Shown here one piece after another: positions 8,575 to 50,756 of a DNA stretch of 64,000 nt. The translations under genes and the position numbers were made by a program. Location: the IMG/VR virus record IMGVR_UViG_3300036715_004471, positions 382,542 to 446,541 of that record; one strand, given 5' to 3'. The notes under the pieces are model-generated. The model was not told the origin of the DNA. It ran no database searches and worked only from the letters and a program-made list of their open reading frames with translations. Position 1 is the stretch's first letter. Every line of letters starts with the position of its first letter.

Positions 8575-8598
8575 AATATCTCCTGTACCACAAATATA

Positions 8599-9117: not shown

Positions 9118-9123
9118 AATACA

Positions 9124-9813
9124 TTAAACCTCGAGATGAAAACAATCATTTACATTCAGTAATCTCCATCCTTCGGGACCGAAATACAATCTAGTCACCG
9201 AAGTATTATCAATTTGAACTTTCCAGGTGAAACCTCTGTCAAATCCAGTAACGTATTGAAGCAGACATTTAATAGTCATGCCATGGCTAAAACATCCAAT
9301 ATTCAACATTGGTAGTTTATTAGCTTTTCTATAGTTGGCTTGTTCAATCATCTTGGGATTATATAGAATTTCATTTTCTACCCAAGCGGAAGATCTGCGC
9401 TCTACCATAGTAAAAGATTCTCCGTTGGGCGGCAAAAATGCTTGATTCAAATAGTTCATTTTTGCTTTAACAGTATCGGTCATTGTAGCAGATCGACTCG
9501 CGCCGGTCCAATCTCCTGCATCATATTCACGAATGTCAGGGACTACAATAATATCTTGATGAATGTCTGCACAAGCTAGTTTAGCAGTTTCTAATGCCCT
9601 ATCATAGCTTGACGAATAAACATAATCGAACTTCTCTCCTCTTTTAAGGAGTCTAAGACCTAAACGTCGCGCTTGATCTTTACCCTTTTCGGTCAGTTTA
9701 ACATGAGCCGTCTGTCCCATGATGTCAGGGGTCGCATTCACCTCAGATTCGCCATGACGAATCAGAGAAAGAATAAATTCATTATCTTGAATCATTCTGA
9801 GTTGTCCTTCCAA
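9124..9813 (-). CDS. histidine phosphatase (phosphoglycerate mutase family)
   Basis: IRHGES, SS..RALETA, GES, SHG, N..HL. Confidence 0.9.
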   Translation of the reverse strand: MEGQLRMIQDNEFILSLIRHGESEVNATPDIMGQTAHVKLTEKGKDQARRLGLRLLKRGEKFDYVYSSSYDRALETAKLACADIHQDIIVVPDIREYDAGDWTGASRSATMTDTVKAKMNYLNQAFLPPNGESFTMVERRSSAWVENEILYNPKMIEQANYRKANKLPMLNIGCFSHGMTIKCLLQYVTGFDRGFTWKVQIDNTSVTRLYFGPEGWRLLNVNDCFHLEV

Positions 9814-10183
9814 TAGTTAAATGGAAACCGTATCTTGGCTCTTTTGAAAGTCCATAATTTTCCCTTAAGTTTAACAAATAGGGACATTGAACCTTAAGCC
9901 AATAATACTCTCCGTTATCTTGTACTCCCCCTTCATATTCAAATTCAATTATTTTGTGTTCGTCCATCCTCCATAAATTGTAATTGGGAATTCTTTCTCC
10001 CCTAATAACGGAAATATGAGCACCCCATACTGGTCGGGTTAATTTCCCCAACCAAGGAGTCTCACTATAGAATAAGCTTCTGTAATATCGTGATATCTCA
10101 TCATCACACATGATTACTAACCACTTGTTGCTCGACGACAGATGGGTGCGCGGCGAATATACCATCTTACCAATAGATTTCAT
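9782..10183 (-). CDS. 2H phosphoesterase family protein
   Basis: Two HxS/T motifs: AHISV and FHLTI. Confidence 0.75.
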   Translation of the reverse strand: MKSIGKMVYSPRTHLSSSNKWLVIMCDDEISRYYRSLFYSETPWLGKLTRPVWGAHISVIRGERIPNYNLWRMDEHKIIEFEYEGGVQDNGEYYWLKVQCPYLLNLRENYGLSKEPRYGFHLTIGRTTQNDSR

Positions 10184-10958: not shown

Positions 10959-11315
10959 TTAGTTGATTGATACCACTACTGCGGCACCAACATCTGATAC
11001 GTGGGAGGCTCTATTATCCGTTAGATAACGAGATAATGTTTCCACCGGATTCTCTGGTAGAGGATTCTCTACAATGAATTTTTCTGCTAACTCTCTCAAA
11101 GCTACAGTTAAGTCCGGATTATGAACCGAACAAACTACTTCCTTCTCACCAGAAACCCAACGAACAATAGAAACGTAATACGTTTCACGTGCGCGAGATA
11201 ACCAAGCAACAGTTAGTCCTGGCGCAGTACCATCAGATTGGTACGCGAAGTTAATAGCCTTGGTGATCTTATCAATTAACGTTTGTGTGTCCATTTTACT
11301 TATCTCTCCATTCAA
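10959..11315 (-). CDS. hypothetical protein
   Basis: ORF coupled to tsf. Confidence 0.6.
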   Translation of the reverse strand: MNGEISKMDTQTLIDKITKAINFAYQSDGTAPGLTVAWLSRARETYYVSIVRWVSGEKEVVCSVHNPDLTVALRELAEKFIVENPLPENPVETLSRYLTDNRASHVSDVGAAVVVSIN

Positions 11316-12300
11316 AATTTGAATTATTTAAAACGCCTTTTTCAAAATTTGGATCTGGCGTAGCAGGAACACCTGACAACTTAGCAACTTCATCAGAGAA
11401 ATTGCCTTTAGTTTGCTGTTCTATTCCTTCACCAACTTGACAACGAATGAAATTCACAATCTCAATCTTGCCACCTAATTGAGCTGCATATTGTGTGTCA
11501 ATAAGTTGCTCTATACTTTTCTTAGGAACCACTACTGATTCCTGTTTAGTCAAACAAACCTCAGTATACCATTTATTAAGCTTGCCTTCAATAATTCTAG
11601 CCCATTGTACTTGAGGTTTTCCAAGCCCTTCTACTTGAGCTTGAAAAATATCTTTTTGTCGATTAAGCACATCTTCTGGTAACTTATCTGGTGATATTGC
11701 TATCGGATTCATTGCCACAATTTGCATTGCTAAATCGTAACCAATTTGTGCAAATGCTTCTGAATTAGCAATTTCTACAGATGGAGCTTTCAATGTAACT
11801 ATTGAAGCTAGTTTATCAGCAGGATGATGTACATATCCAAACACGCGACACGTGTCGTCGATGGGCTCCTCGATCCACCAACGATTGAATACGCATTTTT
11901 CTTTAACTTTAGCAGACAATTCTGTTTGTGCCGTAAGCGCCTCACCATTTGTTAATTTATCGAATGGTAATCCCACCACATGAACTGCGGCAATACTAAA
12001 CCACACTTCTTCCGCGAACCCTCTAAATTCCGGGCTTCTAGCTACAAAATCAGTTTCACAATTTACTTCTAACATCAAAACAGCTTTACTACCAACTGGT
12101 AATTGTACAGGTCCCGCCAATACAATACCTTCAGCGGCGATTTTACCCTCTCTACCAGAAACAATATTCTGTCCCTTGGTTTTGATAATATCAACGGCTT
12201 TTTGTAGATCATCGCCCGCCTCTTTCAAAGCATCATTACAATCTTTCATACCAGCTTGGGTAAGGGCGCGTAATTCTTTTAATAATTCTGATTTATTCAT
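11296..12300 (-). CDS. tsf: translation elongation factor Ts
   Basis: KELRALTQAGMKDC, AAEG, EVNCETDFVA, LAMQIVAMNP, IIEGKL, FIRCQVGEGI. Confidence 0.95.
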   Translation of the reverse strand: MNKSELLKELRALTQAGMKDCNDALKEAGDDLQKAVDIIKTKGQNIVSGREGKIAAEGIVLAGPVQLPVGSKAVLMLEVNCETDFVARSPEFRGFAEEVWFSIAAVHVVGLPFDKLTNGEALTAQTELSAKVKEKCVFNRWWIEEPIDDTCRVFGYVHHPADKLASIVTLKAPSVEIANSEAFAQIGYDLAMQIVAMNPIAISPDKLPEDVLNRQKDIFQAQVEGLGKPQVQWARIIEGKLNKWYTEVCLTKQESVVVPKKSIEQLIDTQYAAQLGGKIEIVNFIRCQVGEGIEQQTKGNFSDEVAKLSGVPATPDPNFEKGVLNNSNFEWRDK

Positions 12301-14538: not shown

Positions 14539-15480
14539 ATGCCTACTTTAAATCCGCCAAAATGTTTCAATTCAACTATGTCATCAAAACCTGGCACCGG
14601 ACCAGTACTAGTAAACAATGTTAACTATCCAGTAAATAGTATGTATACAAATAATACATATTTATGGGATGGCACTAATTGGTCAACAACATCTAGTAAT
14701 GTTATTGATGCATCCGGACCGCTTCCTACAAGACAAAATAGTTGTTCTTCTGAGTTTTTTGGTGCTTCTGGCACAAATCATAATACTGTAATGGTATTTG
14801 GTGGTCAAAGCAGCTCTTCTTTATTAAGAGACACATGGGTATTTGATGGGACTAGTTGGACAAACCCAACACAATCCGGGTCTCCTAGTGCAAGGTACTC
14901 AGCAGCTATGTCATGTGGTTTTTCCGCATTATCAAAAGTTTTGTTATTTGGTGGAAAAAATGAACATGATGTTTTGGGTGACACTTGGTTATGGGATGGA
15001 CATACTAATACATGGGCACAAAAAACACTTGACGTATCACCATCTGCCAGATATGGAGCCAAATTAGTGGGCGGAATTTCTGCTGGAAGAAACTCTATAT
15101 TATTTGGAGGCGCTAATAATTTTGAGCTTTTAAATGATACATTTAGATGGAATGATGCCGCAGAAACTTGGGTAAAATTAACCCCTACGCACTCACCATC
15201 AGCAAGATTTGACCATGTTATGGGAAAAGATGCCGCAAATAGTAACGTTATTGTATTATTTGGCGGATTAAATCAAGACTCTGTACTTTCAGATACATGG
15301 GTTTTTAATGGTACTGATTGGACACAACAGTCTCCCGCAAGTTCTCCATCTGCACGTTATGGCGCTCATATGAGTTATGATGTCACTTCAGGGGCATTAA
15401 TATTATTTGGTGGCACAAATGGATCCACAGTATTTAATGATACTTGGAAATGGACCGGCACAAATTGGGTTCAACTATAA
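14539..15480 (+). CDS. Kelch-repeat beta-propeller protein
   Basis: Repeated SPSAR....LFGG....DTW.WDG..W units. Confidence 0.9.
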   Translation: MPTLNPPKCFNSTMSSKPGTGPVLVNNVNYPVNSMYTNNTYLWDGTNWSTTSSNVIDASGPLPTRQNSCSSEFFGASGTNHNTVMVFGGQSSSSLLRDTWVFDGTSWTNPTQSGSPSARYSAAMSCGFSALSKVLLFGGKNEHDVLGDTWLWDGHTNTWAQKTLDVSPSARYGAKLVGGISAGRNSILFGGANNFELLNDTFRWNDAAETWVKLTPTHSPSARFDHVMGKDAANSNVIVLFGGLNQDSVLSDTWVFNGTDWTQQSPASSPSARYGAHMSYDVTSGALILFGGTNGSTVFNDTWKWTGTNWVQL

Positions 15481-15497: not shown

Positions 15498-15532
15498 AAT
15501 ATGACCCGCATATTTTATATGCGGGTCATATT
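15498..15532. terminator. bidirectional intrinsic terminator
   Basis: Inverted repeat ATATGACCCGCATA/TATGCGGGTCATAT between convergent genes. Confidence 0.8.
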
Positions 15533-16092
15533 TATACGTCTTCTTTTAATTCTAATACCTGAGAAAATCTTGGCAATGCCAAACCAGTTCCATAACTCCA
15601 AGTGTGATCCCCGAACTGACGGTAACCATAAGATCCTAATTCAATGCCTTTACACATCAAATCATAACCTTCGATTGTTTTAACAACACTGATTTTGCAG
15701 TCTCCAAGACTTTCCATGAGAGCGCGGGCGCTATCCATAATTTCAAATACATTTTTAGAATTAGGATTTACTTCAATTAATTCAACCTTAAAAAAGTATA
15801 AACCATGCCATTCATCAACCTGCTCATCTCTGAAACAAGGAGAGGCAGCACAATATTTACCCTTTGGTAATTTATTTTCTACCATCATTTGAATAAAACC
15901 TTGTTCGGCAGAGCCGACTAAATATCCAGGATTTTTGTTTGGATGATCCAACTTAAATCCATATCTATTGTAAGGAAGAGTAACCTCAATGGCTGAGAAT
16001 GGAACAATCCAAGGAGCCTCCATATATGTAAACTCATTGTCCACAAAATGTTGAACAGCTTTGCCTACCCAAACCCAATTGATGGGAGTCAT
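15532..16092 (-). CDS. stand-alone class II aminoacyl-tRNA synthetase-like catalytic domain
   Basis: GSAEQ, motif 2 SPCFRDE, FFKVEL, ELGS, motif 3 GTGLALPR; only 186 aa. Confidence 0.7.
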   Translation of the reverse strand: MTPINWVWVGKAVQHFVDNEFTYMEAPWIVPFSAIEVTLPYNRYGFKLDHPNKNPGYLVGSAEQGFIQMMVENKLPKGKYCAASPCFRDEQVDEWHGLYFFKVELIEVNPNSKNVFEIMDSARALMESLGDCKISVVKTIEGYDLMCKGIELGSYGYRQFGDHTWSYGTGLALPRFSQVLELKEDV

Positions 16093-16344: not shown

Positions 16345-17229
16345 TTAAAGATGTTTCATTATAATACTATAGAATTCCTCTAGGTTAACGTGATCAGGAA
16401 GTCCTGCCGAACCACCATCATTCACTTCAATGACCCACCATTTATCATCTTCAGCTTGAACAATATCCAAAGCCACAAATGGACTCTTGATTCTTTTACC
16501 AATTTCAATCAACCAACTCATTGGAGGAAATTCTACATTCTCAGGATAAACAGCATCATTGCCCCAATAAGGAGTAGTAAATACTGGCGTTCCTTTTACA
16601 AAGAAAGTTCTAAACTCTACTGGTAAGGGCATTCTGCTTTTTGGATGAAGCCCAATCTTTTTCAAAGAAAGAAAATCTCGACAAACTAATCCGCCGTAGA
16701 AGTCTCTACCCTGTAACTTAAAGAAGTTGCTCATGACACGTAACGACTCTTTTTGATCAGATGCGTCTCTAATGAAACACGCGTCATACCATTCATGTTT
16801 ACGGCTTTTCAAGTAATCTTTAATCAAGATTGATTTGTCATTAAATTCTTCTGCAATCTTCTTAGAAATGGCTGGAAGACCGGCATTTGCAATATCATCA
16901 GCCGGAATAATCATTGAATATGGAGTGTATTCTTTCAGTTCTACGTACCATTCTGGAAAATTATAAGACCACATATAGTCTTGATAAGAGTTAACCAACT
17001 CCGCGCCCAAACTATCCATCTCTTGGTAAACGGAAGGTTTAACAATCCATCCTCGATAAAGAGTAGGAGTTTGTTTATTGAAAATAGACATTGGGGATCC
17101 GAAATGACTTTCACTTAGAATACTCACACCAAACCCAACGGATCCGGCAGCTCCCGCTTCGTTCTGCCAAAAACTGTCTACTTGGCGCGGAGAACTAAGA
17201 TTAGTAGGGAATAAGATATTCATTTTCAC
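16345..17229 (-). CDS. ATP-grasp domain protein (DUF4343/R2K-like)
   Basis: LYRGW, IKDYLKSRKHEW, EFRTF, FVALD, VIEVNDG. Confidence 0.8.
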   Translation of the reverse strand: MKMNILFPTNLSSPRQVDSFWQNEAGAAGSVGFGVSILSESHFGSPMSIFNKQTPTLYRGWIVKPSVYQEMDSLGAELVNSYQDYMWSYNFPEWYVELKEYTPYSMIIPADDIANAGLPAISKKIAEEFNDKSILIKDYLKSRKHEWYDACFIRDASDQKESLRVMSNFFKLQGRDFYGGLVCRDFLSLKKIGLHPKSRMPLPVEFRTFFVKGTPVFTTPYWGNDAVYPENVEFPPMSWLIEIGKRIKSPFVALDIVQAEDDKWWVIEVNDGGSAGLPDHVNLEEFYSIIMKHL

Positions 17230-29136: not shown

Positions 29137-29150
29137 AATTTTTATAAAAT

Positions 29151-29500
29151 GGAAGAGTTATTCTATAATCCGGGTTCTGTTATTTCAAACAATCATTAAT
29201 CTTGGCGAATAGTCACCTATTCGCTCCAGCACCAACCCGTAAACATCGGGCGAGTAACCCTCAAACGTTTACTATTTGGCTTGCTTCAAATGGGGTTTGC
29301 CGTGCCATGTTTGTTACCAAACATGCGGTGGGCTCTTACTCCACCATTTCACCCTTACCGGAAGCCGAAGCTTCTTAGGCGGTATCTTTCTGTTGCACTT
29401 TCCGTCGTGTCACCACGCCCAGCCGTTAACTGGCATTCTACTCTACGAAGCCCAGAATTTCCTCAGTCTTGCGACCGCGATTGCTCAAACAACTCTTTCC
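29151..29500 (-). ncRNA. rnpB: RNase P RNA (bacterial type A-like)
   Basis: GAGGAAATTCTGGGC, GGAAAGTGCAACAGAAA, AAGGGTGAAA, GGTAAC, AAACCCC..GAAGCAAG, ACAGAACCCGGATTAT; P1 GAGTTGTT/AATAACTC. Confidence 0.93.
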
Positions 29501-35018: not shown

Positions 35019-35100
35019 TGGTGGATTTGGAGAGAATCGAACTCTCAAACTCTGAAACTCTGAATGCAAATCAGAAATTATCCCATTTAATTACAAGCCC
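35019..35100 (-). tRNA. tRNA-Ala(TGC), atypical (8-nt duplication in variable region)
   Basis: G3:U70, loop TTTGCAT, AAACTCTG tandem repeat, CCA. Confidence 0.65.
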
Positions 35101-35304: not shown

Positions 35305-35389
35305 TGGTGGATCTGGAGGGACTCGAACCCGCGTAGGCTTTCGCCGAGAGCTTAAAAGGCTCTTGTCATTGCCGCTAGACAACAAATCC
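35305..35389 (-). tRNA. tRNA with Lys anticodon (TTT) and long variable arm
   Basis: AGAGC-CTTTTAA-GCTCT, V-arm GGC-GAAA-GCC, CCA. Confidence 0.8.
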
Positions 35390-35402
35390 ATATTTCGTAA
35401 TT

Positions 35403-35479
35403 TGGTAGGTTTACTTGGATTCGAACCAAGACTGAGCAGATTAAAAGTCTGCTGTGCTAGCCATTAACACTATAAACCC
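35403..35479 (-). tRNA. tRNA-Lys(TTT)
   Basis: Cloverleaf, CCA. Confidence 0.88.
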
Positions 35480-35511
35480 ATGAAGGAGATTATAACATCT
35501 CCTTTTTTTTA

Positions 35512-35907
35512 TTAGGCAGTAGTTGGTGCTAAGACCCAACAATTACCTGTGCGTGGTTGTGCTTGAGGAACACTTACAAAAAATCCACCAGTTGGTGCAC
35601 TTGGTCCATATGCTTCACCAGTTAAGGTTCCATCCGTATTTTTTACTAACTTAGCTGGCGCTTTAACTGTTGGATCAGTAGTTGGGAAATAACAACCAAC
35701 CGTAACTCCACCATCAGAATCTAGTCCCCCAAAATCAGCGGCGCAAGGAGCTTGAGCTAACTCTCCCTTAGCAACTCCTGATACAACTTTTAAAGTTCCC
35801 TTGCCCGTGTCTACAACTATTGTAGCAACACCATCAGAATCAACACTAGTAACAAATCCAAAACTCATATCATCATCAGAAAAATACATAACGTAAAAAG
35901 GTTTCAT
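35512..35907 (-). CDS. hypothetical protein
   Basis: AGGAG RBS before MKPF; hairpin plus A/T run downstream. Confidence 0.6.
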   Translation of the reverse strand: MKPFYVMYFSDDDMSFGFVTSVDSDGVATIVVDTGKGTLKVVSGVAKGELAQAPCAADFGGLDSDGGVTVGCYFPTTDPTVKAPAKLVKNTDGTLTGEAYGPSAPTGGFFVSVPQAQPRTGNCWVLAPTTA

Positions 35908-35984
35908 TTTAGCTCCTAAAATAACAATCCCAGTTATATAAGCCAAAATGCATACATTATTCTATAATGTATTTTTTATTCATG

Positions 35985-36392
35985 TCACGCTTGATTTTGA
36001 GCAAATGCGTGGCGAATTTTTCCACTTTTACTGACGAAAACAAAACCTTTGAAAGTATCACCCTCATCCACTACTTCACAGTCAAACATAAACTGAATCA
36101 TGTTTGGATTTTCATTTCCTCTGACAGCCATCAGTTTCCAATGCTCTGGTTTGGCTGATTCATTTTTTAGAAAGTCTGCCATGTCGTCATTATCTTCCAG
36201 AAGACCGCCATAGTCGCCTGATGGGGCGATGTTGACAAACTCGTGAGTTAACTCTTCTGAATTCTTCTTGATCCATTCGCAAATTGCGTTTTGCAAATCA
36301 TTTATCTTAAGTCCCAATTTTTCTTGAAGTTGCTCTTCCCATTTTTCGATACTAGCACCTTCTTCAAGACCAAGATCATCTAGAACGTCCAT
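35985..36392 (-). CDS. hypothetical acidic protein
   Basis: ORF with RBS. Confidence 0.65.
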   Translation of the reverse strand: MDVLDDLGLEEGASIEKWEEQLQEKLGLKINDLQNAICEWIKKNSEELTHEFVNIAPSGDYGGLLEDNDDMADFLKNESAKPEHWKLMAVRGNENPNMIQFMFDCEVVDEGDTFKGFVFVSKSGKIRHAFAQNQA

Positions 36393-36404
36393 GATAACTT
36401 TCCT

Positions 36405-36653
36405 TCAATGGAAAACCCATAAGTTAGAATTCAAAATCTTTTTCAACTCTGCATAAATCTTGTCTATGCAACCACGACAATAATATCCTAAAATACCAGG
36501 TTCAGTGCCACCTGCCCCATATACAGTAATGGTTGCACAAGTTGTACCCTTTTTTATTTTGCCATTTTCTCCAACATATTGAGGATCTTTATCACATTCA
36601 TGATAACGACATTTTTTTCTACCAGACTTATCTACTTCTAGTCCAACTCTCAT
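36405..36653 (-). CDS. PARP-type Zn-finger-like small protein
   Basis: EVDKSGRKKC...C..IKKG..YCRGC. Confidence 0.45.
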   Translation of the reverse strand: MRVGLEVDKSGRKKCRYHECDKDPQYVGENGKIKKGTTCATITVYGAGGTEPGILGYYCRGCIDKIYAELKKILNSNLWVFH

Positions 36654-37017
36654 TCTGAAAGCATCCTTTCCAAACGAGCGTGAAGTCTTTCAGCTTCATA
36701 TCTAGTCAAAGCAATAAGCGCATCTTCTTCAACAGCTTTTGCGCCTACTTCCATGATTTGATCGTCCCAATTACTGTATCGGAAATCTTCAAAATCTTCT
36801 TTTGAATCTGGTCCCTCTACAGAATAAGAATCTTCAATAGTTTGAAGAGGAGTATTGACGTTAACAACATGAATGTAAAAAATCTTATTCTTACTTGAAG
36901 AATCTTTTGCTTTATGTCTTTTCACAACACACCATTTAATAAAAATTGAAACAACAAGAATTGGAAAGACTATTTTTCGCGTGTTACCATTACACCACAC
37001 TGCAATGTTTAATTTCT

Positions 37018-37092
37018 TGGTTGCAGTGGAGGGAATCGGACCCCCTTCTCGTTCTTATAATGAAATGTAATCCTTCACAGGCATTTGTTTCA
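37018..37092 (-). ncRNA. chimeric Y-RNA 5' half / tRNA 3' half
   Basis: AATGC..AAGGATTACAT followed by T arm and CACTGCA-ACCA. Confidence 0.5.
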
Positions 37093-37215
37093 TGGTCTCT
37101 CAAGTAGGGTTTACGCCTACAACATCCCTTTAATTCAGGAGTTTTACACATTACTTTTCATAATTAAGTTAAGTTAACTGCCCTTAATATGAATTTCACT
37201 TAAACTATCGAGAGA
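37093..37215 (-). pseudogene. degenerate tRNA-like element with ~50-nt AT-rich insert in D-loop
   Basis: TCTCTCGA/TTGAGAGA stem + CCA; GTAGG/CCTAC T stem. Confidence 0.45.
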
Positions 37216-37217
37216 TA

Positions 37218-37292
37218 TGGAGGGTTCGGAGGGACTTGAACCCTCAACAAACTGGTTAAAAGCCAGCTACTCTGCCATTGAGTTACGAACCC
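37218..37292 (-). tRNA. tRNA-Lys(TTT)
   Basis: Cloverleaf, loop CTTTTAA, CCA. Confidence 0.92.
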
Positions 37293-37294
37293 AT

Positions 37295-37558
37295 TTATAC
37301 GCCGTTAATCTTCTTAGAAGTCCAATCATGGAAATCAAAAGTCGATTTACACGGAAAAACTCCAATCAAAGGATGTGCAATGCAATTATGCACAAACCAC
37401 CAACTATGATGTTTGTAGACAGGCTTCTCTTCCTGCTTATATCCTTCGATACGTTTATGAAACCTCATTTCGGCTCCCGACTCATCAGAGTTTGGGAATT
37501 CCTTTTCTTCCTTCTTCGGTTTCACTTCGCCATCTTCTTCATCATATTCCCAAAACAT
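37295..37558 (-). CDS. hypothetical protein
   Basis: WWFVHNCIAHPL..FHDWT. Confidence 0.6.
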   Translation of the reverse strand: MFWEYDEEDGEVKPKKEEKEFPNSDESGAEMRFHKRIEGYKQEEKPVYKHHSWWFVHNCIAHPLIGVFPCKSTFDFHDWTSKKINGV

Positions 37559-37602
37559 TTTATTATCTTTCTATGTTTGTGGTTTGGTAGGGCAACGGGT
37601 AT

Positions 37603-38394
37603 GTGAAAATATATTTTCACATATCAATATTATCATACATATGTATGTTTCAACTATTTACACAAGAGCAATTACAAACTTCCAGATCAAATGATTTGTT
37701 ACCATTAAAATGTCAACAATGCTCTAAAACATTTTTAATATCTAAAAAGTACATAACACAAGTTCTCAATGGTAAATCTAGCCGAGGGTATAAACTACAT
37801 TTTTGTAGTTCTAAATGTTCACAATTGTCAAGAACTACTTCTGAAATTTTTTCATGCACTTTTTGTGATAATCCATTAAAAATGAAATTATCACAAAAAC
37901 AAAGATCAAAATCTGGAAATATTTTTTGTTCTAAATCGTGCGCAGCTAAATATAATAACACTCATAAAACTAAAGGTAGCAGGCGTTCTAAACTTGAAAT
38001 TTGGTTAGAGCAACAACTTTTATCATCTTACCAACAATTAAAAATACAATTCAATTGCAAAGAAACTATCAATTCTGAATTAGATATTTATATTCCAAGT
38101 TTAAAATTAGCATTTGAGTTAAATGGCATCTTTCATTATGAGCCAATTTATGGTTCAGAAAAATTGGCTTCCATTCAAAATAATGATAACAGGAAATTTC
38201 AAGCCTGTTTAGAACAAGACATTGAGCTTGTTATTATAGATACGTCATCTCAAAAATATTTTAAAGAAAAAACATCACAAAAATATCTTAAAATTATAAA
38301 AGATATAATTGATAATAAACTAAATTACTGGTCGTCCCCCCGAGATTCGAACTCGGCACCTCTGCCTTATCAGAGCAGCGTTCTAACCAAATGA
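37603..38394 (+). CDS. Zn-finger + PD-(D/E)xK/Vsr-like endonuclease
   Basis: FCSxxC repeats; ELDIYIPSLKLAFELNGIFHY. Confidence 0.8.
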   Translation: MKIYFHISILSYICMFQLFTQEQLQTSRSNDLLPLKCQQCSKTFLISKKYITQVLNGKSSRGYKLHFCSSKCSQLSRTTSEIFSCTFCDNPLKMKLSQKQRSKSGNIFCSKSCAAKYNNTHKTKGSRRSKLEIWLEQQLLSSYQQLKIQFNCKETINSELDIYIPSLKLAFELNGIFHYEPIYGSEKLASIQNNDNRKFQACLEQDIELVIIDTSSQKYFKEKTSQKYLKIIKDIIDNKLNYWSSPRDSNSAPLPYQSSVLTK

Positions 38395-38405
38395 ACTAGA
38401 GGACG
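38329..38405 (-). tRNA. tRNA-Ile(GAT)
   Basis: Loop CTGATAA, CCA. Confidence 0.9.
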
Positions 38406-38410
38406 GTTAT

Positions 38411-38504
38411 TGTGGATACACAGGGAATCGAACCCTACGCTAGCCTGCTTTCGACTCCTTTCTACCCACCTTGGTAGGTGGACAATGGCGGGCTCTCTAT
38501 ACCC
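38411..38504 (-). ncRNA. D-armless tRNA-like RNA with G3:U70
   Basis: GGGTATA/TGTATCC acceptor, T arm, long central stem. Confidence 0.55.
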
Positions 38505-38508
38505 AAGT

Positions 38509-38586
38509 TGGTGGACACATTGGGAGTCGAACCCAATTTTTCCCGACAATTGTCCGAGCTTTTCATAGGGACGGGTTACTGTGCCC
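38509..38586 (-). ncRNA. D-armless tRNA-like RNA with G3:U70, A73-CCA
   Basis: GGGCACA/TGTGTCC-ACCA, TTGGG-TTCGACT-CCCAA. Confidence 0.6.
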
Positions 38587-38793
38587 AAAATCTTAAACAC
38601 TAAAAATGAGTACGATATCTTCTCCGCCTTCCTTAATAAAAGCATCATAACTCATACTACACGGAGCGTTGAACCAAACATAATTGTTATTATCAATAGT
38701 CCATGTCAACTTTCTATCAGGATTAAATCTAACTTCTTTATCATCTTCCATGATATAAGTGCCAAATTTGTCCATCTTGATCTGTCTTTTCAT

Positions 38794-38869
38794 TGGTGGT
38801 ACCTAACAGGATCGAACTGTTTTCGTCCGCTTTTCAGACGGCGGTCTTGACCACAAATACGAAGGTACC
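38794..38869 (-). tRNA. tRNA-Phe(GAA)
   Basis: Loop CTGAAAA, CCA; weak D and AC stems. Confidence 0.75.
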
Positions 38870-38878
38870 ATATTTGTC

Positions 38879-38953
38879 TGGTGGCTCCTGTTGGTATCGC
38901 GCCAACATTTCCTGCTCTTCAGGCAGGCGCTAATCTATTTCAGCTAAGGAGCC
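38879..38953 (-). tRNA. tRNA-Phe(GAA)
   Basis: Loop CTGAAGA, CCA; atypical T-loop. Confidence 0.8.
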
Positions 38954-38958
38954 ATGTT

Positions 38959-39033
38959 GTAGTTTAATAAGGGCTCGAACCTTAATATATTTTTGTATAT
39001 CGTTTCCACGAGTACTCATAAACATTAAACTAC
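38959..39033 (-). ncRNA. tRNA-like RNA with extended closing stem, no CCA
   Basis: GTAGTTTAAT/ATTAAACTAC, TAAGG-TTCGAGC-CCTTA. Confidence 0.5.
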
Positions 39034-39111
39034 TGGTCGGGCGAGTGGGGATCGAACCCACCTCAAGGTGCTTATAAGACACCCGGATGCAACCAGCTTA
39101 CCTTTCACCCG
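39034..39111 (-). tRNA. tRNA-Ile(TAT)
   Basis: GGTGT-CTTATAA-GCACC, CCA. Confidence 0.82.
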
Positions 39112-39117
39112 GTTGAC

Positions 39118-39291
39118 TCACCAAAGATTATAGTGGCAGGCGAAACATTCGAATAAAAATGTTGAAGATTTTGGTTTTTCTTTAACCATTACTACTTCAT
39201 CATCTTCATTATTTTCATAATGACCGCTCACCATTCTCTTGCAACGATGGCATTCATAAGTAAAATCGCAAGACTTCTCTTCGTTTTCCAT
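39118..39291 (-). CDS. 57-aa Zn-ribbon protein (below ORF-track cutoff)
   Basis: MENEEKSCDFTYECHRCK..FECFACHYNLW. Confidence 0.55.
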   Translation of the reverse strand: MENEEKSCDFTYECHRCKRMVSGHYENNEDDEVVMVKEKPKSSTFLFECFACHYNLW

Positions 39292-39309
39292 GTTGTTTCT
39301 TTCTTTGGC

Positions 39310-39385
39310 TGGCAGGTGTAACGGGTGCTGCCCCCGCTTGGTCTTGCTCGACAGGCAAGTGCAATTGCTGAATTGCTATACACCT
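39310..39385 (-). tRNA. tRNA-Asp(GTC)
   Basis: Loop CTGTCGA, G73-CCA; atypical T-loop. Confidence 0.8.
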
Positions 39386-39388
39386 ATA

Positions 39389-39463
39389 TGGCACCCCCGA
39401 GCGGACTCGAACCGCCCTCATCTGCGTGACAAGCAGACCGCCTCACCCGATGCGTACGGGGGT
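39389..39463 (-). tRNA. tRNA-Asp(GTC)
   Basis: Loop TTGTCAC, G73-CCA. Confidence 0.87.
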
Positions 39464-39483
39464 ATGTTATACAATATATCACT

Positions 39484-39885
39484 TTATTCGTAGATGAAAG
39501 GTCTTTCTAATCTCCCAATTGTTAAATGAAACCAAGGCTTAAACGGAAAGCCTAACATTTCTCTGACTGCCGACAATTCTTCTGAATAAACATCAATCCG
39601 GGCATGGATTCCATTTTCGAATCTTATCACATGGTTGTAATAAAAATCTACTTCGTATCCCTCCAACTTACCCCAGGCTGATGGGTCAGTGACGGTCTCG
39701 CCGCGAACAACTGAGATATGTGTTCCCCACAACCCTTTTGGATTAGATTCTATTCCATATTTTTTCAAATGCCAAGAATAATACTCAGCAATTTGATCGT
39801 CACACGAAAGTAAACACCACCAAGGTTCAAATTGTTTAGATCCTTTTTTCAAATCGAAATGAAGTGTTCCAGATGAACTAAACAT
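39484..39885 (-). CDS. 2H phosphoesterase family protein (paralog of 9782..10183)
   Basis: WGTHISVVRGE..FHLTIGR. Confidence 0.75.
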   Translation of the reverse strand: MFSSSGTLHFDLKKGSKQFEPWWCLLSCDDQIAEYYSWHLKKYGIESNPKGLWGTHISVVRGETVTDPSAWGKLEGYEVDFYYNHVIRFENGIHARIDVYSEELSAVREMLGFPFKPWFHLTIGRLERPFIYE

Positions 39886-39906
39886 GGCTTGTGTCTTTCA
39901 AAAATT

Positions 39907-40076
39907 TGATGACTAGAAATCGTAAAGACGAAGTTTATTGAATTGAATGACCAATCAACAATAATATGGTATTACAGTTTTAACCTTCTGATAATAATAC
40001 AGGACATTCTATTTATTCTCTTAGAAATGCTTGGAGGTTATTGTTATTATTTATGTAGTCCTTACTGCATTCATCA
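39907..40076 (-). ncRNA. Y-RNA-like module with long AT-rich insert
   Basis: TGATG-AATGC-AGTAAGG-ACTACAT..CTTTAC-GATTTCTAGT-CATCA. Confidence 0.65.
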
Positions 40077-40155
40077 TGGTCCGCCCCGCCGGGGTTTCAC
40101 CAGCATTTCCGCCTCATGGCAGCGTCTTGACTATTTAGACGATGGATAGATATTA

Positions 40156-40231
40156 TGGCGATACGTGTGGGAATCGAACCCACCGTCATCCGCTTAACAG
40201 GCGGGCGCTGCACCAAGCCAGCTAACGTACC
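40156..40231 (-). tRNA. tRNA-Asn(GTT)
   Basis: Loop CTGTTAA, CCA. Confidence 0.85.
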
Positions 40232-40356
40232 ATTTAGTTATGTTAGAGTCGGTTACGGTAGATCTTTGCCGTCACTCTCTCTAATCCTAGAGTCAAAGTC
40301 TAGATGCTCTTACATTACATAACAAGGTAACATATTTTCGAAGATATGTTTTCCTT

Positions 40357-40432
40357 TGGCTCATCCCCTCAGATTCGAACTGAGATATCACGAGTTAACA
40401 GCCCGCCTCACGACCAATTGTGATAAGGATGA
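40357..40432 (-). tRNA. tRNA-Asn(GTT)
   Basis: Loop CTGTTAA, CCA. Confidence 0.8.
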
Positions 40433-40435
40433 ATA

Positions 40436-40583
40436 TATTGACGAGAATTGTAAAGATTCGCTGCGCCCTGCACTTTTGTCTTGCGACCCACTTGTGCTAC
40501 CACTCATGCGAGTCTTTGAGTGGATGGGATTCGATACCCATACCATCGAGCATTTTCTATGTAATCCTTAACGTATTCACTAT
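40436..40583 (-). ncRNA. YrlA-like Y RNA (Ro stem + permuted T/acceptor/D arms)
   Basis: Conserved stem plus ATGGG-TATCGAAT-CCCAT, CCACTCA/TGAGTGG closed acceptor, D-like arm. Confidence 0.75.
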
Positions 40584-40586
40584 CAA

Positions 40587-40740
40587 CAATAAACTGAGAG
40601 GAACAGCTCTGACAATAATAACCCTCTTGCCAGTCAGCGGAGCTCGTTTACGTTTTACTTCAAACACGAACAAATTGAAGGTTTTCGGTAATCCATTTCA
40701 ACCGAGACTGTTTTAACCCATTCCTAATCGCAGCTTACTG
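40587..40740 (-). ncRNA. unknown structured RNA
   Basis: CAGTAAGCTG/CAGTTTATTG and AGGAATGG/CTGTTCCT closing helices with 3 internal hairpins. Confidence 0.45.
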
Positions 40741-40741
40741 C

Positions 40742-40817
40742 TGGCTCCGTGGGTACGATTCGAACGTACATATCATTGGTTAACAGCCAATTTCATTGCC
40801 AGTTATGATACCACGGA
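40742..40817 (-). tRNA. tRNA-Asn(GTT)
   Basis: Loop CTGTTAA, CCA. Confidence 0.87.
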
Positions 40818-40926
40818 ATGATGCCAGCGATATGAGTTTAAGCCCACATTCTATTGTCCCCTATATGGACATACTGACAAAGAAAAGTCAACGAGTATAT
40901 ATATCTAGAATAATAGTCATTGACGT

Positions 40927-41142
40927 CTAGTCTTCAACTTTCATTTCATCGATTATGAGATATCTTCCCTGAGATACCCATAACGTTGATCTGTCTCTGG
41001 TCCAAGGACTTGCATGTGGTAAGTCCTTGCAATCTTGCTCGATATATTCTTCAACGTATTTCTCGGCTGATTCGAAAGATTTGAATGCCTTTTGAATATC
41101 ACTACCTTCGTAATCATAGCCCAAAGATACTAAAAAGATCAT
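40927..41142 (-). CDS. hypothetical protein
   Basis: 71-aa ORF inside tRNA array. Confidence 0.55.
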   Translation of the reverse strand: MIFLVSLGYDYEGSDIQKAFKSFESAEKYVEEYIEQDCKDLPHASPWTRDRSTLWVSQGRYLIIDEMKVED

Positions 41143-41156
41143 AAATCAACTTTCTT

Positions 41157-41232
41157 TGGTCGGGGACACGGGATTTGAACCCACACCACATGATTCCGGA
41201 TCACGTACGCTACCAAGTTACGCCAATCCCCG
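41157..41232 (-). tRNA. tRNA-Pro(CGG)
   Basis: C1:G72, A73; loop TCCGGAA. Confidence 0.8.
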
Positions 41233-41234
41233 AT

Positions 41235-41310
41235 ATCAAAATACGTCAGGAATCGAACCTGAACTGTGGGGTGATTACCCCAATCCTGCCCTTAGACGAC
41301 ATATTTTGAT
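41235..41310 (-). ncRNA. tRNA-like RNA with extended closing stem, 6-nt loop, no CCA
   Basis: ATCAAAATATG/CGTATTTTGAT, TGGGG-TAATCA-CCCCA, TCAGG-TTCGATT-CCTGA. Confidence 0.55.
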
Positions 41311-41386
41311 TGGTCGGGGAACTCAGATTTGAACTGAGACTACATGCTTCCTGAGCACGGATGCTACCAGATTACAACATTCCCCG
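41311..41386 (-). tRNA. tRNA-Pro(AGG)
   Basis: C1:G72, A73; loop TCAGGAA. Confidence 0.78.
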
Positions 41387-41389
41387 ATT

Positions 41390-41465
41390 TTGACGACAAA
41401 ATGAAATAAGTTATTTTGATTCGGTTTATAAGACTGAAATGTAAACCTAATTTCTCATTCGTCAA
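41390..41465 (-). ncRNA. short Y-RNA-like module
   Basis: TTGACG-AATGA..AGG-TTTACAT..ATTTTGT-CGTCAA. Confidence 0.7.
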
Positions 41466-41466
41466 T

Positions 41467-41542
41467 TGGTCGGGAATGCCGGATTTGAACCGACACAAGA
41501 TGATTCCAGATCACCGAGACTACCAAATTATCATAATTCCCG
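41467..41542 (-). tRNA. tRNA-Pro(TGG)
   Basis: Loop TCTGGAA, CCA. Confidence 0.78.
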
Positions 41543-41563
41543 AAAATATAACCCCATGGTTAT

Positions 41564-41648
41564 TGGCGGATCTGGAGAGACTCGAACTCTCGATGGGTTT
41601 CCCCGACTGGTTAAGAGCCAGCTGTTATTGCCACTAAACGACAGATCC
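41564..41648 (-). tRNA. tRNA with Lys anticodon (CTT) and long variable arm
   Basis: GCTGG-CTCTTAA-CCAGT, V-arm GGG-GAAA-CCC, G73-CCA. Confidence 0.82.
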
Positions 41649-42619: not shown

Positions 42620-42695
42620 TGGAGTCGAAAGTAGGAATCGAACCTACTGTGACAGTTTTGCAGACTGTTCCTCAAAGCCATCGAGGACTTTCGAC
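42620..42695 (-). tRNA. tRNA-Cys(GCA)
   Basis: Loop CTGCAAA, U73-CCA. Confidence 0.85.
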
Positions 42696-42747
42696 TTATC
42701 AAGGCTCTCGCCTTGGTCCAACCACCGAAGTGAATTGGGGGATGTTA

Positions 42748-42888: not shown

Positions 42889-43329
42889 TTATCTACCCAA
42901 TCTCCACCAACCAAAATCTTTAGCAGTTTTTCTTCTGTGACAATTTGCGCATCTAACAACACATTTAGATATTTCTAAAGCTATTTTATCTAAGGATGCG
43001 CAATCATTAATCATACTGGAAATGCTGCATTCTTTATTTTCAAGATGATCAAAATCCAAAACAATCAAATCTTTTTCACCACAATCCACACAACCATTTT
43101 TTAGATGTGAAACAATAAAATCTTGTATTAAAGGCTTTAATGTTTCTTTTCTATTATAAATACGTTGTTTTACTTTTTCAGTATTAAGTAAGTAATGTTT
43201 CTTACCATTTTCTAAATTGCACAACTTACAAAGATTTTGTCTTCCATCTTTAGATAATTTCTTTTTGTTAAAATCATCTAGCGATTTTTTATCTTTACAG
43301 ATTGTACAAACTTTGAATTCTTCACTCAT
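42889..43329 (-). CDS. HNH endonuclease
   Basis: CVDCGE..VLDFDH..EISKCVVRCANCHR. Confidence 0.88.
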   Translation of the reverse strand: MSEEFKVCTICKDKKSLDDFNKKKLSKDGRQNLCKLCNLENGKKHYLLNTEKVKQRIYNRKETLKPLIQDFIVSHLKNGCVDCGEKDLIVLDFDHLENKECSISSMINDCASLDKIALEISKCVVRCANCHRRKTAKDFGWWRLGR

Positions 43330-43530: not shown

Positions 43531-43608
43531 TGGTTGCGGGGGCTGGAGTCGAACCAACTATTACAAGGCTTATGAGACCTGTGTGATATTCCGTTTCACT
43601 CTCCCACA
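43531..43608 (-). tRNA. tRNA-Met(CAT)
   Basis: Loop CTCATAA, CCA. Confidence 0.85.
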
Positions 43609-43908: not shown

Positions 43909-43983
43909 TGGTGGGGCAGCTTGGACTTTAACCAAGGACCTCAACTCTTACTGAGTTGCGCTCTTTCGCTGAGCTAATGCCCC
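43909..43983 (-). tRNA. tRNA with aberrant anticodon loop (CAGTAAG); identity unclear
   Basis: Good acceptor and D arms, CCA; no U33; T-loop TTAAAGT. Confidence 0.5.
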
Positions 43984-49193: not shown

Positions 49194-50756
49194 TCAGATT
49201 TGAACAGACTCAATGGTTGAGACCCATAGGTCTTTGTTGTTACCAAGTTCAAGGAACTTTGCAATTACATCAAAAACTTGATCACTAAAACCACCTACGT
49301 TAAGGATATTCTCCTTATCGTAAGCTTGAGTAGAGGTATTCGGAGTAAGATCAATACAAACAAGCTTTGCTTTCTTGTTACGAGCTTTGAACTCAGTCCA
49401 AGCTTTCATCGTAGCGGTACCACGACTTCTGCCTGAATCAACCCAAGACTCGTTATCGCTTACATAAATGACTAGATCGCCCATGGCTTTTCTACGATTC
49501 AACTCTTCCATTGGAAGCGAACAGTTAGTGCCACCTCCGCCAAATCCTGCTAGGATCTTGGCGTTAGTCATAATTGAATCCATTGGATTCAGCTTATGAG
49601 CATGAACTCTAGTATCGAATGGTAATACTTCTACATCAGAATTTCTGCGCATAATAGCTGCGGCAACCAGGGCTGCCACATCAATACAACGCATCTTGCT
49701 GGATACATTTCCACGATTTCCGGTGACCGGAGAATTCATGGATCCAGAAGTATCTACCATTACATAAACCTTTTTGTTTTCAAACTCTGGAATGTTCTCC
49801 AACGCATGCTCAGCAGCCTTTTGCAAAGCTACAGAAACCTTAGCAGGAACACTTGCATCCATATTCAAAAACGTAGTGAACAACTGGTACGGGAATACCT
49901 TTGCTCTCTTAACTTGCTCCTTATCCTCCAACTTGGCACAGATAAGCCCTAACAGATCACGATCTGCTAACACATTATGACGAGCAAATGTGTTAAGGTT
50001 CTGTCTAATCTGGTTCCAAGTTGCATTGACTGCAATCTTTTTCCAGTGTTCAGCAGTCAATGGTAAAGCCGTAAGCTTTTGGAAAGGTACATGCGGGATT
50101 TCTTTTGACATATCTTTCTTGAAGTCTTCAAACTGCTTAACTAGAGCACACAAGTCTTCCTTTGCATACTCCTTATCTAGCAAGTACCCAAATATAGCAG
50201 AACGTTGCTTATTGGTTGGCTTCGGATGAACCAACTTGATGATATCTTGCAATGACGGATCATTACCAACATCTGCCGCAAACAACTGCTCATCATTCAA
50301 AGATTCCAAATACTTTTGGATTAATCTTTTAGGGCGAGTACCTAAAGACTTACGTCCAGTAGCCCCTGAACGAATAACCTGCACGAAATTTCTCAACATC
50401 TTTGGAGAATCAACTACCTTATCAAAGATTTTGGACAAAAGCTCGGAGTCCTTTCCAGCAACTACCGCAGCCAAAACCGCAGGCATATCTTTCATTAAAC
50501 CCTCTTGACGAGAGTATACTGCCAAGCGAGCAACGTACTCAGCCGGCAACTTGTTAGCTAACTCTAACACTTTCTTAAGTTGATCTTCATCAGATACATA
50601 ATATGTTCCGTTAAAACAACCAGTCATAGCTAATTGAGCCAATGCGGCTTTGTCAGACAAACTATAAGCTTGTCCACCAGCATTGTTAACTACATTGGTC
50701 GGCTTTACAGCCTTTGAAGACACAAACTTGCTAGCAAATAATTTCTTTGATGACAT
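49194..50756 (-). CDS. rsr: Ro60/Rsr TROVE + vWA RNA-binding protein
   Basis: NNAGGQAY, LAQLAMTG..GTYY, MKDMP, HPKP, VFPYQL, DTSGSM, GGGTNC, VSDNESW, VGGFSD. Confidence 0.93.
   Translation of the reverse strand: MSSKKLFASKFVSSKAVKPTNVVNNAGGQAYSLSDKAALAQLAMTGCFNGTYYVSDEDQLKKVLELANKLPAEYVARLAVYSRQEGLMKDMPAVLAAVVAGKDSELLSKIFDKVVDSPKMLRNFVQVIRSGATGRKSLGTRPKRLIQKYLESLNDEQLFAADVGNDPSLQDIIKLVHPKPTNKQRSAIFGYLLDKEYAKEDLCALVKQFEDFKKDMSKEIPHVPFQKLTALPLTAEHWKKIAVNATWNQIRQNLNTFARHNVLADRDLLGLICAKLEDKEQVKRAKVFPYQLFTTFLNMDASVPAKVSVALQKAAEHALENIPEFENKKVYVMVDTSGSMNSPVTGNRGNVSSKMRCIDVAALVAAAIMRRNSDVEVLPFDTRVHAHKLNPMDSIMTNAKILAGFGGGGTNCSLPMEELNRRKAMGDLVIYVSDNESWVDSGRSRGTATMKAWTEFKARNKKAKLVCIDLTPNTSTQAYDKENILNVGGFSDQVFDVIAKFLELGNNKDLWVSTIESVQI

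Follow-up and report, generated by a model that had tools for sequence, protein, structure and literature searches.

The window analyzed here, a stretch of 64,000 nucleotides, is the end of a 446.5-kb phage record (IMGVR_UViG_3300036715_004471, positions 382,542 to 446,541) that carries 56 tRNAs. ARAGORN calls a tRNA-Lys(ttt) at 35305-35389(-) and a tRNA-Lys(ctt) at 41564-41648(-), the latter inside the Pro tRNA cluster. Both are 85 nt with encoded CCA, and their Rfam tRNA (RF00005) scores, 47.2 and 55.4 bits respectively, exceed the gathering score of 29. Canonical, class I tRNA-Lys(UUU) genes coexist with them. One, at 35403-35479(-), has A73, lies 13 nt upstream of the long-arm UUU gene, scores 60.1 bits and folds as a clean cloverleaf; the other, at 37218-37292(-), has U73, scores 70.1 bits and has an anticodon stem (GCTGG/CCAGT) identical to that of the long-arm CUU tRNA. 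An 82-nt tRNA-Ala(UGC) at 35019-35100(-) has a 12-nt variable region and G3.U70 (50.8 bits). Its T arm and 3' acceptor strand resemble those of the long-arm Lys genes, and it may thus be a paralog, but it folds poorly (z -0.03) and its status is uncertain. Also inside the tRNA region, at 29150-29496(-), is a phage-encoded bacterial class A RNase P RNA (Rfam RF00010, 288.2 bits, full length), the ribozyme that processes tRNA 5' ends.

An earlier note had claimed that the two lysine tRNAs possess long variable arms of a kind that bacteria normally limit to Leu, Ser, Tyr and Sec tRNAs, and that canonical tRNA-Lys(UUU) genes accompany them; we confirm this observation. One point of context requires correction, in that the source is a huge phage and not a bacterium. 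The acceptor stems are GGATTTG/CAGATCC (UUU) and GGATCTG/CAGATCC (CUU), the discriminators are A73 and G73, and the anticodon loops are CTTTTAA (anticodon at 35354-35356) and CTCTTAA (anticodon at 41613-41615). The acceptor/T branch is a normal 7/5, although the UUU tRNA has a C50.U64 mismatch in its T stem; the anticodon stem has 5 bp, the anticodon and T loops have 7 nt, U33 is present and the T loop is of the TTCGA type. The D stems have only 3 bp (GTC/GAC and GTT/AAC), with U13 and U22 unpaired. The 14-nt variable regions, C-GGC-GAAA-GCC-TAC (35333-35346) and C-GGG-GAAA-CCC-ATC (41592-41605), each comprise 1 nt, a 3-bp stem capped by GAAA, and 3 nt. The two molecules thus have the architecture of class II tRNAs, with a variable region of more than 10 nt forming a stem-loop together with a 3-bp D stem and 13:22 unpaired, but not the anticodons. 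The note had proposed that an alternative fold lacking the arm would refute its claim; thermodynamic folding instead keeps the extra hairpin in both. It is present in the MFE five-arm cloverleaf of the CUU tRNA (z -2.24) and in both the MFE and the centroid of the UUU tRNA, whose MFE is an alternative fold 0.8 kcal/mol below the cloverleaf centroid. The sequence was found in no RNA run.

These genes are not oddities, but belong to a widespread, apparently undescribed family. Close relatives carry UUU and CUU long forms side by side. A pattern of D loop, anticodon and T loop that requires a long variable region matched 95 viral contigs and at least 120 metagenome stretches, whereas among 185,579 prokaryote species genomes it found only 4 short MAG contigs, all of them phage-like tRNA arrays. 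Because this pattern fixes the anticodon loop, D loop and T loop, statistics on those parts are biased. Model R1, which scores the two genes at 101.4 (UUU) and 101.2 (CUU) bits, yielded 96 distinct best hits in which 96.8% of cells pair (62.7% when shuffled), with a covariation score of 0.80 against 0.17. The extra-arm helix is 81% paired, with 10, 30 and 33 double changes. Homologs in other phage contigs keep the fold through compensatory changes, and a strain variant in an independent metagenome sample (run X3) carries two double changes, 27:43 A-U to G-C and 31:39 C-G to A-U.

The molecule is a mosaic. In nearest-neighbor comparisons, ordinary tRNA-Lys is closest for the acceptor arm (43 v 7), the anticodon stem (39 v 8) and the T arm (62 v 0), whereas tRNA-Tyr is closest only for the D arm (47 v 6; 47 of 67 cases). 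Bacterial-type tRNA-Tyr, including phage tRNA-Tyr(GUA), shares the 3-bp D stem, a D loop of the TAGYGGCAAT/GAGCGGCCAAA type, an extra arm of 1 nt, 3 bp, tetraloop and 3 nt, G1-C72, U35 and, in the UUU tRNA, A73. One relative, the L002 UUU homolog, shares with phage tRNA-Tyr a 37-nt stretch of D arm plus anticodon stem that differs only at positions 34 and 36. On the other hand, the 3' tail of the variable region is A-Y-C rather than UUC. Canonical tRNA-Lys shares the anticodon loop CUYUUAA, the Lys-like acceptor and T arms, the spread of discriminator bases and the clustering with Lys genes in arrays, but has a variable region of 4-8 nt rather than 11-21 nt, and a D stem of 4 bp.

The Tyr-like core, which the earlier note missed along with the family, makes TyrRS the relevant mischarging risk. 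The UUU tRNA keeps A73, U35, G1-C72 and a Tyr-type extra arm, which are the determinants listed as critical for Tyr (PMC9976931), so some Tyr charging cannot be excluded. TyrRS binds the extra arm and needs A73 and U35, and this phage has no normal class II tRNA-Tyr. However, several facts make deliberate or tolerated insertion of Tyr at Lys codons improbable. Both G34 and A36 of the Tyr anticodon are replaced, and the G73 of the CUU tRNA is a known antideterminant for TyrRS (PMC9976931). Position 73 is A56/U22/G2 in 80 long Lys tRNAs, so that 24 of 80 lack A73, and A41/U7/G1 in 49 ordinary phage tRNA-Lys of the same arrays, but A in 44 of 44 Tyr tRNAs. Genuine tRNA-Tyr(GUA) coexists in 40 of 99 loci. 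The acceptor and T arms are Lys-like. Finally, Lys codons sit at conserved Lys/Arg positions: the 25 Lys codons of the conserved phage gene NAMPT align to K11, R5, Q4, A2, D, E and V in a bacterial homolog, and none to Y, L or S; as AAA is the commonest codon of the phage (5.6%), K-to-Y substitution would damage its proteins.

The earlier note offered two interpretations, a nuclease-resistant tRNA-Lys or Leu/Ser-charged missense tRNAs, and our results support it only in part, disfavoring the second. The first is consistent with everything found: Lys-type acceptor, anticodon and T arms, Lys-like variation at position 73, complementary isoacceptor sets, a standard Lys meaning of AAR, a phage-only distribution and RNA-repair genes in the same genome. 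For the second reading, LeuRS and SerRS ignore the anticodon, the UUU and CUU tRNAs have A73 and G73, respectively, and the phage's own tRNA-Leu(AAG/UAG) also have 3-bp, GAAA-capped arms. Nevertheless, Leu tRNAs in these arrays have A73 in 92 of 92 cases and Ser tRNAs G73 in 57 of 70, while G73 occurs in 2 of 80 family members. The D arm is nearest to Leu in 0 of 80. Arms of the co-resident Ser tRNAs are mostly 4-7 bp and 16-20 nt, against 3 bp and 14 nt here (0-5 bp across the family). Both Lys isoacceptors are kept together, and in 31 of 45 loci holding both forms, the long and ordinary forms carry complementary wobble bases; in many arrays, the long form supplies the Lys anticodon that the ordinary form lacks. 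No LeuRS-family or class IIa aaRS gene is present in the record. We thus consider Leu or Ser charging very unlikely. Nematode nev-tRNAs likewise combine a class II shape with anticodons of class I amino acids and are conserved within one lineage, but they derive from tRNA-Leu, are charged only with Leu and misread codons (PMC3333845), whereas the phage family is Tyr-like only in its core, varies at N73 and fits standard Lys decoding. The allo-tRNAs are non-canonical bacterial or phage tRNAs with long variable arms and diverse anticodons, but have 8/4 or 9/3 acceptor/T branches and insert Ser, Ala or Cys (PMC5389517). The two tRNAs here, with 7-bp acceptor and 5-bp T stems, have none of the 8/4, 9/3, 8/5 or 9/4 branches of allo-tRNAs and tRNA-Sec-like molecules; the only Rfam tRNA-Sec hit in the window is a Cys(GCA) tRNA at 42623-42696.

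We propose that the two genes are functional elongator tRNAs of a phage-restricted family, tRNA-Lys built on a class II, tRNA-Tyr-like core, whose altered shape may evade tRNA-Lys-cutting nucleases; we assign this reading a probability of roughly 0.55. The analysis itself establishes the five-arm fold and its maintenance by compensatory changes, the occurrence of the family in many unrelated phage tRNA arrays and essentially nowhere in cellular genomes, and the mosaic of Tyr-like and Lys-like parts. Lysylation, decoding and nuclease evasion are inferred. In this view, the host LysRS, which reads the anticodon (U35, U36, N34) and tolerates foreign tRNA bodies, would charge the tRNAs, which would then decode AAA/AAG during infection. 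The UUU anticodon alone transfers Lys identity to other tRNA bodies (PMC9976931). The E. coli rule of A73 for tRNA-Lys appears loose here, given the variation among ordinary phage tRNA-Lys. Non-A discriminators (G73 here, U73 in many relatives) may additionally block TyrRS and LeuRS. It should be noted, however, that class IIb synthetases approach tRNA from the variable-loop side, as in the yeast AspRS complex, so a long arm could hinder LysRS. A switch of shape within one amino-acid identity, when the synthetase does not read the arm, is exemplified by the type I tRNA-Leu of Streptomyces coelicolor (PMC6614811), a cellular tRNA in which the arm was lost rather than gained.

The most likely reason for the odd shape, also an inference, is that tRNA-Lys is a repeated target of anti-phage nucleases that cut the anticodon arm. 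tRNA-Lys(UUU) is cut by PrrC, by AriB of PARIS (at 40/41) and by the bacterial Schlafen RorSlfn5 (at 30/31) (PMC12409363; PMC13056530). A remodeled core with an extra arm emerging next to the 3' strand of the anticodon stem would make the phage copy a poor substrate while leaving anticodon-based charging intact. The functional model is the phage T5 tRNA-Lys(UUU), which escapes AriB by two base changes at 39 and 41, next to the cut site, but retains the class I shape (PMC12409363), whereas here the whole core architecture is changed and escape is only a hypothesis. The phage studied here encodes RtcB, an RNA ligase and Ro60, and these RNA-repair genes are consistent with such a conflict. Long variable regions in normally class I species are enriched among ANN decoders even without Lys (30/270 v 10/533, p = 5e-8), although this enrichment is driven half by Ile(UAU). 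Two facts sit uneasily with this proposal. About half of the family has an unstructured, A-rich variable region of 11-12 nt rather than a helix, and thus one steric mechanism may not fit all members; and the canonical tRNA-Lys genes beside the long ones are unexpected if canonical shapes were useless during infection.

A less likely but possible alternative is that the extra arm is a tolerated relic. A tRNA-Tyr-like gene, or a Tyr/Lys recombinant, could have acquired a Lys anticodon inside a phage tRNA array and, because LysRS reads mainly the anticodon, never lost its class II core; the tRNAs would then be ordinary Lys suppliers. The Tyr-like core, the variation of the arm from 0 to 5 bp and the general plasticity of variable regions in phage arrays, where 63 of 92 Leu tRNAs have lost the arm, favor this idea. 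Against it, the long variable region persists in at least 75 distinct sequences whose acceptor stems have diverged completely, the arm stems covary, and the A-Y-C tail (and in half the family the whole A-rich motif) is conserved. A neutral 10-nt insert should often have been deleted, and the family is essentially absent from cellular genomes.

Two further possibilities are doubtful. The class II core could tune decoding rather than defense, since A/U-rich anticodons (Lys, Asn, Ile, Met, Thr) pair weakly and a changed core could alter ribosome or EF-Tu behavior, modification, or frameshifting at AAA-rich sites in an AT-rich phage. This phage does invest in translation (EF-Ts, RNase P RNA and 56 tRNAs), and the enrichment of long variable regions among ANN decoders would fit, although it is equally explained by nuclease targeting. 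However, no precedent is known for a variable arm improving decoding, and canonical tRNA-Lys genes are kept alongside. More doubtful still is a non-translational use, as a decoy that soaks up a tRNA-Lys nuclease or as a dedicated substrate for a phage enzyme. A candidate enzyme lies in the tRNA region, at 15532-16092: a minimal class II aaRS-like protein, confidently identified as a catalytic core but of unknown substrate. It belongs to a broad phage family (PHROG 4806) and was not found in any of the other fetched long-Lys loci, which cover only a few kb around each tRNA, and the tRNAs have full elongator features, encoded CCA and both isoacceptors.

Finally, the data raise a broader possibility, which we consider possible but less likely than not: that phages systematically reshape the tRNAs that bacterial immune nucleases attack. 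The clearest case is Lys, but Thr(UGU), Asn, Met and Ile(UAU) also show long variable regions. In this view, such tRNAs are rebuilt into five-armed, class II-like molecules that anticodon-reading synthetases still charge, but that shape-reading nucleases such as PrrC/RloC, PARIS AriB or Schlafens cannot cut. If so, the extra arm would be a general, previously unrecognized counter-defense device, and a natural source of nuclease-proof, body-orthogonal tRNAs.

ARAGORN finds 38 tRNA genes on the minus strand of the window, among them tRNA-Lys(ttt) at 35305-35389 and tRNA-Lys(ctt) at 41564-41648, both 85 nt, which Rfam's tRNA model scores at 47.2 and 55.4 bits. Read from the sequence, both have a 7-bp acceptor stem (GGATTTG or GGATCTG paired with CAGATCC), a D stem of only 3 bp with 13:22 unpaired, a D loop AGYGGCAA, a 5-bp anticodon stem with the loop CUUUUAA or CUCUUAA, a 14-nt variable region made of 1 nt, a 3-bp stem, a GAAA loop and 3 nt, a 5-bp T stem (with one C.U mismatch in the UUU gene), and an encoded CCA. 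The discriminators are A73 (UUU) and G73 (CUU), and free-energy folding keeps the extra hairpin in both. Two ordinary tRNA-Lys(UUU) genes lie at 35403-35479 and 37218-37292. The earlier note's description of two tRNAs with Lys anticodons and long variable arms, coexisting with canonical Lys(UUU) tRNAs, is therefore correct. Its interpretation, that these might be nuclease-resistant tRNA-Lys or Leu/Ser-charged missense tRNAs, is only partly supported, as detailed below.

The window is the last 64 kb of a 446,541-bp IMG/VR virus record with 56 tRNA genes, and the DNA occurs in microbial-mat, sediment and aquatic metagenomes. IMG/VR classes the record as a provirus. Positions 20,000-130,000 of the record, outside the window, have 46-59% GC against 33-36% in the rest, and three oddly shaped tRNA calls lie there; the record may be composite, by way of a host flank, an island or a chimeric assembly. 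The window carries a full-length bacterial class A RNase P RNA (29150-29496, minus strand; 288 bits) inside its tRNA region, as well as a C5 DNA methylase. It also encodes EF-Ts, a Ro60/TROVE-vWA protein and NAMPT (11296-12300, 49194-50756 and 2263-3651, all on the minus strand), the last very similar to a bacterial NAMPT of solved structure (7yqo; 579 bits). Elsewhere the record encodes RtcB and an RNA ligase (record positions 8546-9850 and 335796-336278), and together these genes form a translation and RNA-repair module. An HNH endonuclease gene (PHROG 2255; window 42889-43329, minus strand) is inserted among the tRNA genes, and may be a mobile element that shuffles the array.

Other tRNAs of the record are also unusual. 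A 75-nt class I-sized “tRNA-Tyr(GUA)” at window 43909-43983 (minus strand) has A33 and an aberrant T loop (TTAAAGT), and the record has no normal class II tRNA-Tyr. The same phage has an 88-nt tRNA-Arg(ACG) with a stem-loop variable arm (record positions 357716-357803) and an 82-nt tRNA-Ala(UGC) with a 12-nt variable region that folds poorly (window 35019-35100, minus strand; z -0.03). One ARAGORN call with an undefined two-base anticodon and two weak Rfam-only tRNA hits (34.3 and 32.8 bits), at window 41237-41307, 38797-38869 and 43534-43608 (all minus strand), may be degenerate or unusual tRNAs within the array.

The two long-arm genes belong to a family. A D-loop plus anticodon pattern found close relatives in three viral contigs, where the long UUU and CUU forms sit side by side, next to Ala and ordinary Lys genes. 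A looser pattern, which required only the T loop, a long gap, a YUU anticodon loop and the D-loop core, matched 95 viral contigs and at least 120 metagenome stretches. Among one genome each of 185,579 prokaryote species, it matched only 4 contigs, all of them short MAG contigs filled with tRNA genes, that is, phage-type arrays. Similar DNA was also sought in cultured or deposited phages: a megablast search with 12 kb returned nothing, and blastn searches with single tRNAs found only three uncultured 634-642 kb phages and unrelated 26-nt T-arm matches.

Parsing of all Lys and Tyr tRNAs in the fetched loci gave 80 distinct long Lys tRNAs, with variable regions of 11-21 nt, and 49 ordinary ones, with variable regions of 4-8 nt; nothing lay in between. 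A covariance model built from eight members retrieved them ahead of all other tRNAs. On its 96 distinct best hits, 96.8% of cells pair, against 62.7% after shuffling and below 49% when partners are slid, and 22 of 23 pairs show double changes. The extra-arm helix is 81% paired, with 10, 30 and 33 double changes. We note that this alignment is fitted to the model and includes a few Tyr and other tRNAs. Arm stems differ widely (GGC/GCC, GCA/TGC, GTGA/TCAC, GCCCA/TGGGC and others) under GNRA-type caps. Further, a strain variant in an independent aquatic sample, found among DNA contigs, carries two compensatory pairs in the anticodon stem and converts U5.G68 to C5-G68. About half of the family (43/80) instead has an unstructured, sequence-conserved, A-rich region of 11-12 nt, of the type UAUACAAACAYC. 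No RNA run was found that holds the region.

The anatomy of the molecule is that of a mosaic. The D arm GTCTAGCGGCAATGACA is the D arm of class II phage tRNA-Tyr(GUA), and one relative shares 37 nt with such Tyr tRNAs and differs only at positions 34 and 36. The arm architecture (1 nt/3 bp/tetraloop/3 nt) is also that of those Tyr tRNAs. A FastTree phylogeny of tRNA bodies groups most long Lys tRNAs with some Tyr, which raised the possibility of a single origin from tRNA-Tyr. However, this tree is weakly supported, and comparison with Tyr and ordinary Lys sets that were not chosen by D-arm pattern shows that only the D arm is Tyr-like. In that comparison, the nearest neighbor of a long Lys is Tyr for the D arm (47 v 6), but ordinary Lys for the acceptor plus N73 (43 v 7), the anticodon stem (39 v 8) and the T arm (62 v 0). 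The anticodon stem of the window's CUU tRNA is identical to that of the canonical gene at 37218-37292. Anticodon switch, recombination and convergence all remain possible as sources of this mosaic.

The finding is real, under selection and phage-specific, whereas the amino acid that these tRNAs accept is inferred from four lines of evidence, and the purpose of their shape is hypothesis. First, N73 is A56/U22/G2 in long Lys and A41/U7/G1 in ordinary Lys, but it is A in all 44 Tyr and all 92 Leu tRNAs, and G in 57/70 Ser tRNAs of the same arrays. The family therefore does not behave as a TyrRS, LeuRS or SerRS substrate. Second, Lys identity rests on the anticodon triplet plus a modest A73 effect, and a UUU anticodon transplanted into other bodies confers Lys acceptance (PMC9976931). 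Third, of 45 loci with both forms, 24 have long UUU plus ordinary CUU and 7 have the reverse, and the long form is often the phage's only copy of that isoacceptor. Fourth, the 25 Lys codons of the phage NAMPT align with K (11), R (5), Q (4), A (2), D, E and V in a bacterial homolog of solved structure, and never with Y, L or S. This result led us to reject a sense-codon reassignment of AAR. AAA is the commonest codon of the phage, at 5.6%, and missense at AAR would hit the phage's own proteins. On the other hand, class IIb synthetases face the variable-loop side of tRNA, as in the AspRS complex. Also, the UUU gene keeps A73, U35 and G1-C72, so minor Tyr charging cannot be excluded.

Two tRNAs with a CUA (amber-reading) anticodon exist, at record positions 15230-15303 and 320811-320884, but reading TAG as sense lengthens ORFs only in the 20-130 kb high-GC part, where spurious frames are expected; in the low-GC phage part, TAGs lie upstream of starts and stop codons are read normally. 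Stop-codon recoding was thus rejected for the window. A phage-encoded LysRS, LeuRS, SerRS or other full synthetase was likewise not found: profile searches of the record, which did not extend to the TyrRS (PF00579) and class I LysRS (PF01921) families, gave no PF00133 or PF00587 match, and no LeuRS-family or class IIa synthetase gene. The only PF00152 match was a weak hit to a 186-aa stand-alone protein at window 15532-16092 (minus strand). This protein has no sequence match in the PDB, but is confidently predicted (pLDDT 96) to fold as a class II aaRS catalytic core without an anticodon-binding domain, closest to the PylRS catalytic domain (TM 0.70). Its motif 2 (FRDE) and motif 3 (GTGLALPR) are invariant, at least 558 clusters of about 190 aa exist, many on huge contigs, and it matches PHROG 4806 (“histidyl tRNA synthetase”). 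It lies next to an R2K ATP-grasp gene (16345-17229) and a Kelch-repeat gene (14539-15480). It was not found in any of the other fetched long-Lys loci, although these cover only a few kb around each tRNA.

Why these tRNAs have acquired such a shape is a matter of hypothesis. tRNA-Lys(UUU) is the target of PrrC, of PARIS AriB (which cuts between 40 and 41 of the anticodon stem) and of a bacterial Schlafen (which cuts at 30/31), and phage T5 escapes AriB through two base changes beside the cut (PMC12409363; PMC13056530; PMC10264068). The extra arm leaves the core directly after position 43, next to these sites, and the phage also carries the RNA-repair genes noted above. In the same arrays, long variable regions appear in other normally class I species: Ile(UAU) 15/21, Asn 5/49, Thr(UGU) 5/34, Met 4/67 and His 3/36. 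They are 6.5-fold enriched among ANN decoders even with Lys excluded (30/270 v 10/533, p = 5e-8), and AriB's other targets are Thr(UGU) and Asn(GUU) (PMC12409363). These facts fit a counter-defense reading but do not prove it, as half of the enrichment comes from Ile(UAU) and known nuclease targets are numerous. A neutral relic and a decoding-tuning role remain live alternatives.

The variation in shape within these arrays (loci L034-L126, phage tRNA arrays) is not confined to lysine. Of 92 distinct Leu tRNAs, 63 are class I-sized (variable region 5-7 nt), all with A73. The long arm carried by 15 of 21 Ile(UAU) tRNAs has a loop that is a conserved CAGAUUA-type sequence, and some Thr(UGU) and Trp(CCA) tRNAs share the long-Lys body and even its A-rich variable motif. 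Long-arm Thr, Asn, Met and Arg tRNAs are also present in the arrays. Annotation by anticodon alone hides such variants.

By these inferences, the tRNAs would work like tRNA-Lys, but they look like tRNA-Tyr. They are not allo-tRNAs, which have an 8/4 or 9/3 branch; they are not nev-tRNA-like, as those are Leu-derived and Leu-charged; and they are not tRNA-Sec-like. Full-text literature searches found no description of a long-arm tRNA-Lys in phages, and the report on evasion by phage tRNAs (PMC10264068) does not mention variable arms.

Textbook rules hold that, in bacteria and their phages, only Leu, Ser, Tyr and Sec tRNAs carry a long extra arm. Here, a large, phage-specific family breaks that rule for lysine while apparently keeping the standard code. 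If the tRNAs are lysylated, then class IIb LysRS, EF-Tu and the ribosome accept a class II core with a Lys anticodon, which is useful for tRNA engineering. If the arm blocks tRNA-Lys nucleases, it adds a structural route to the known sequence-level escape of phage tRNAs, and would also give a direct, testable explanation for part of the large tRNA arrays of huge phages.
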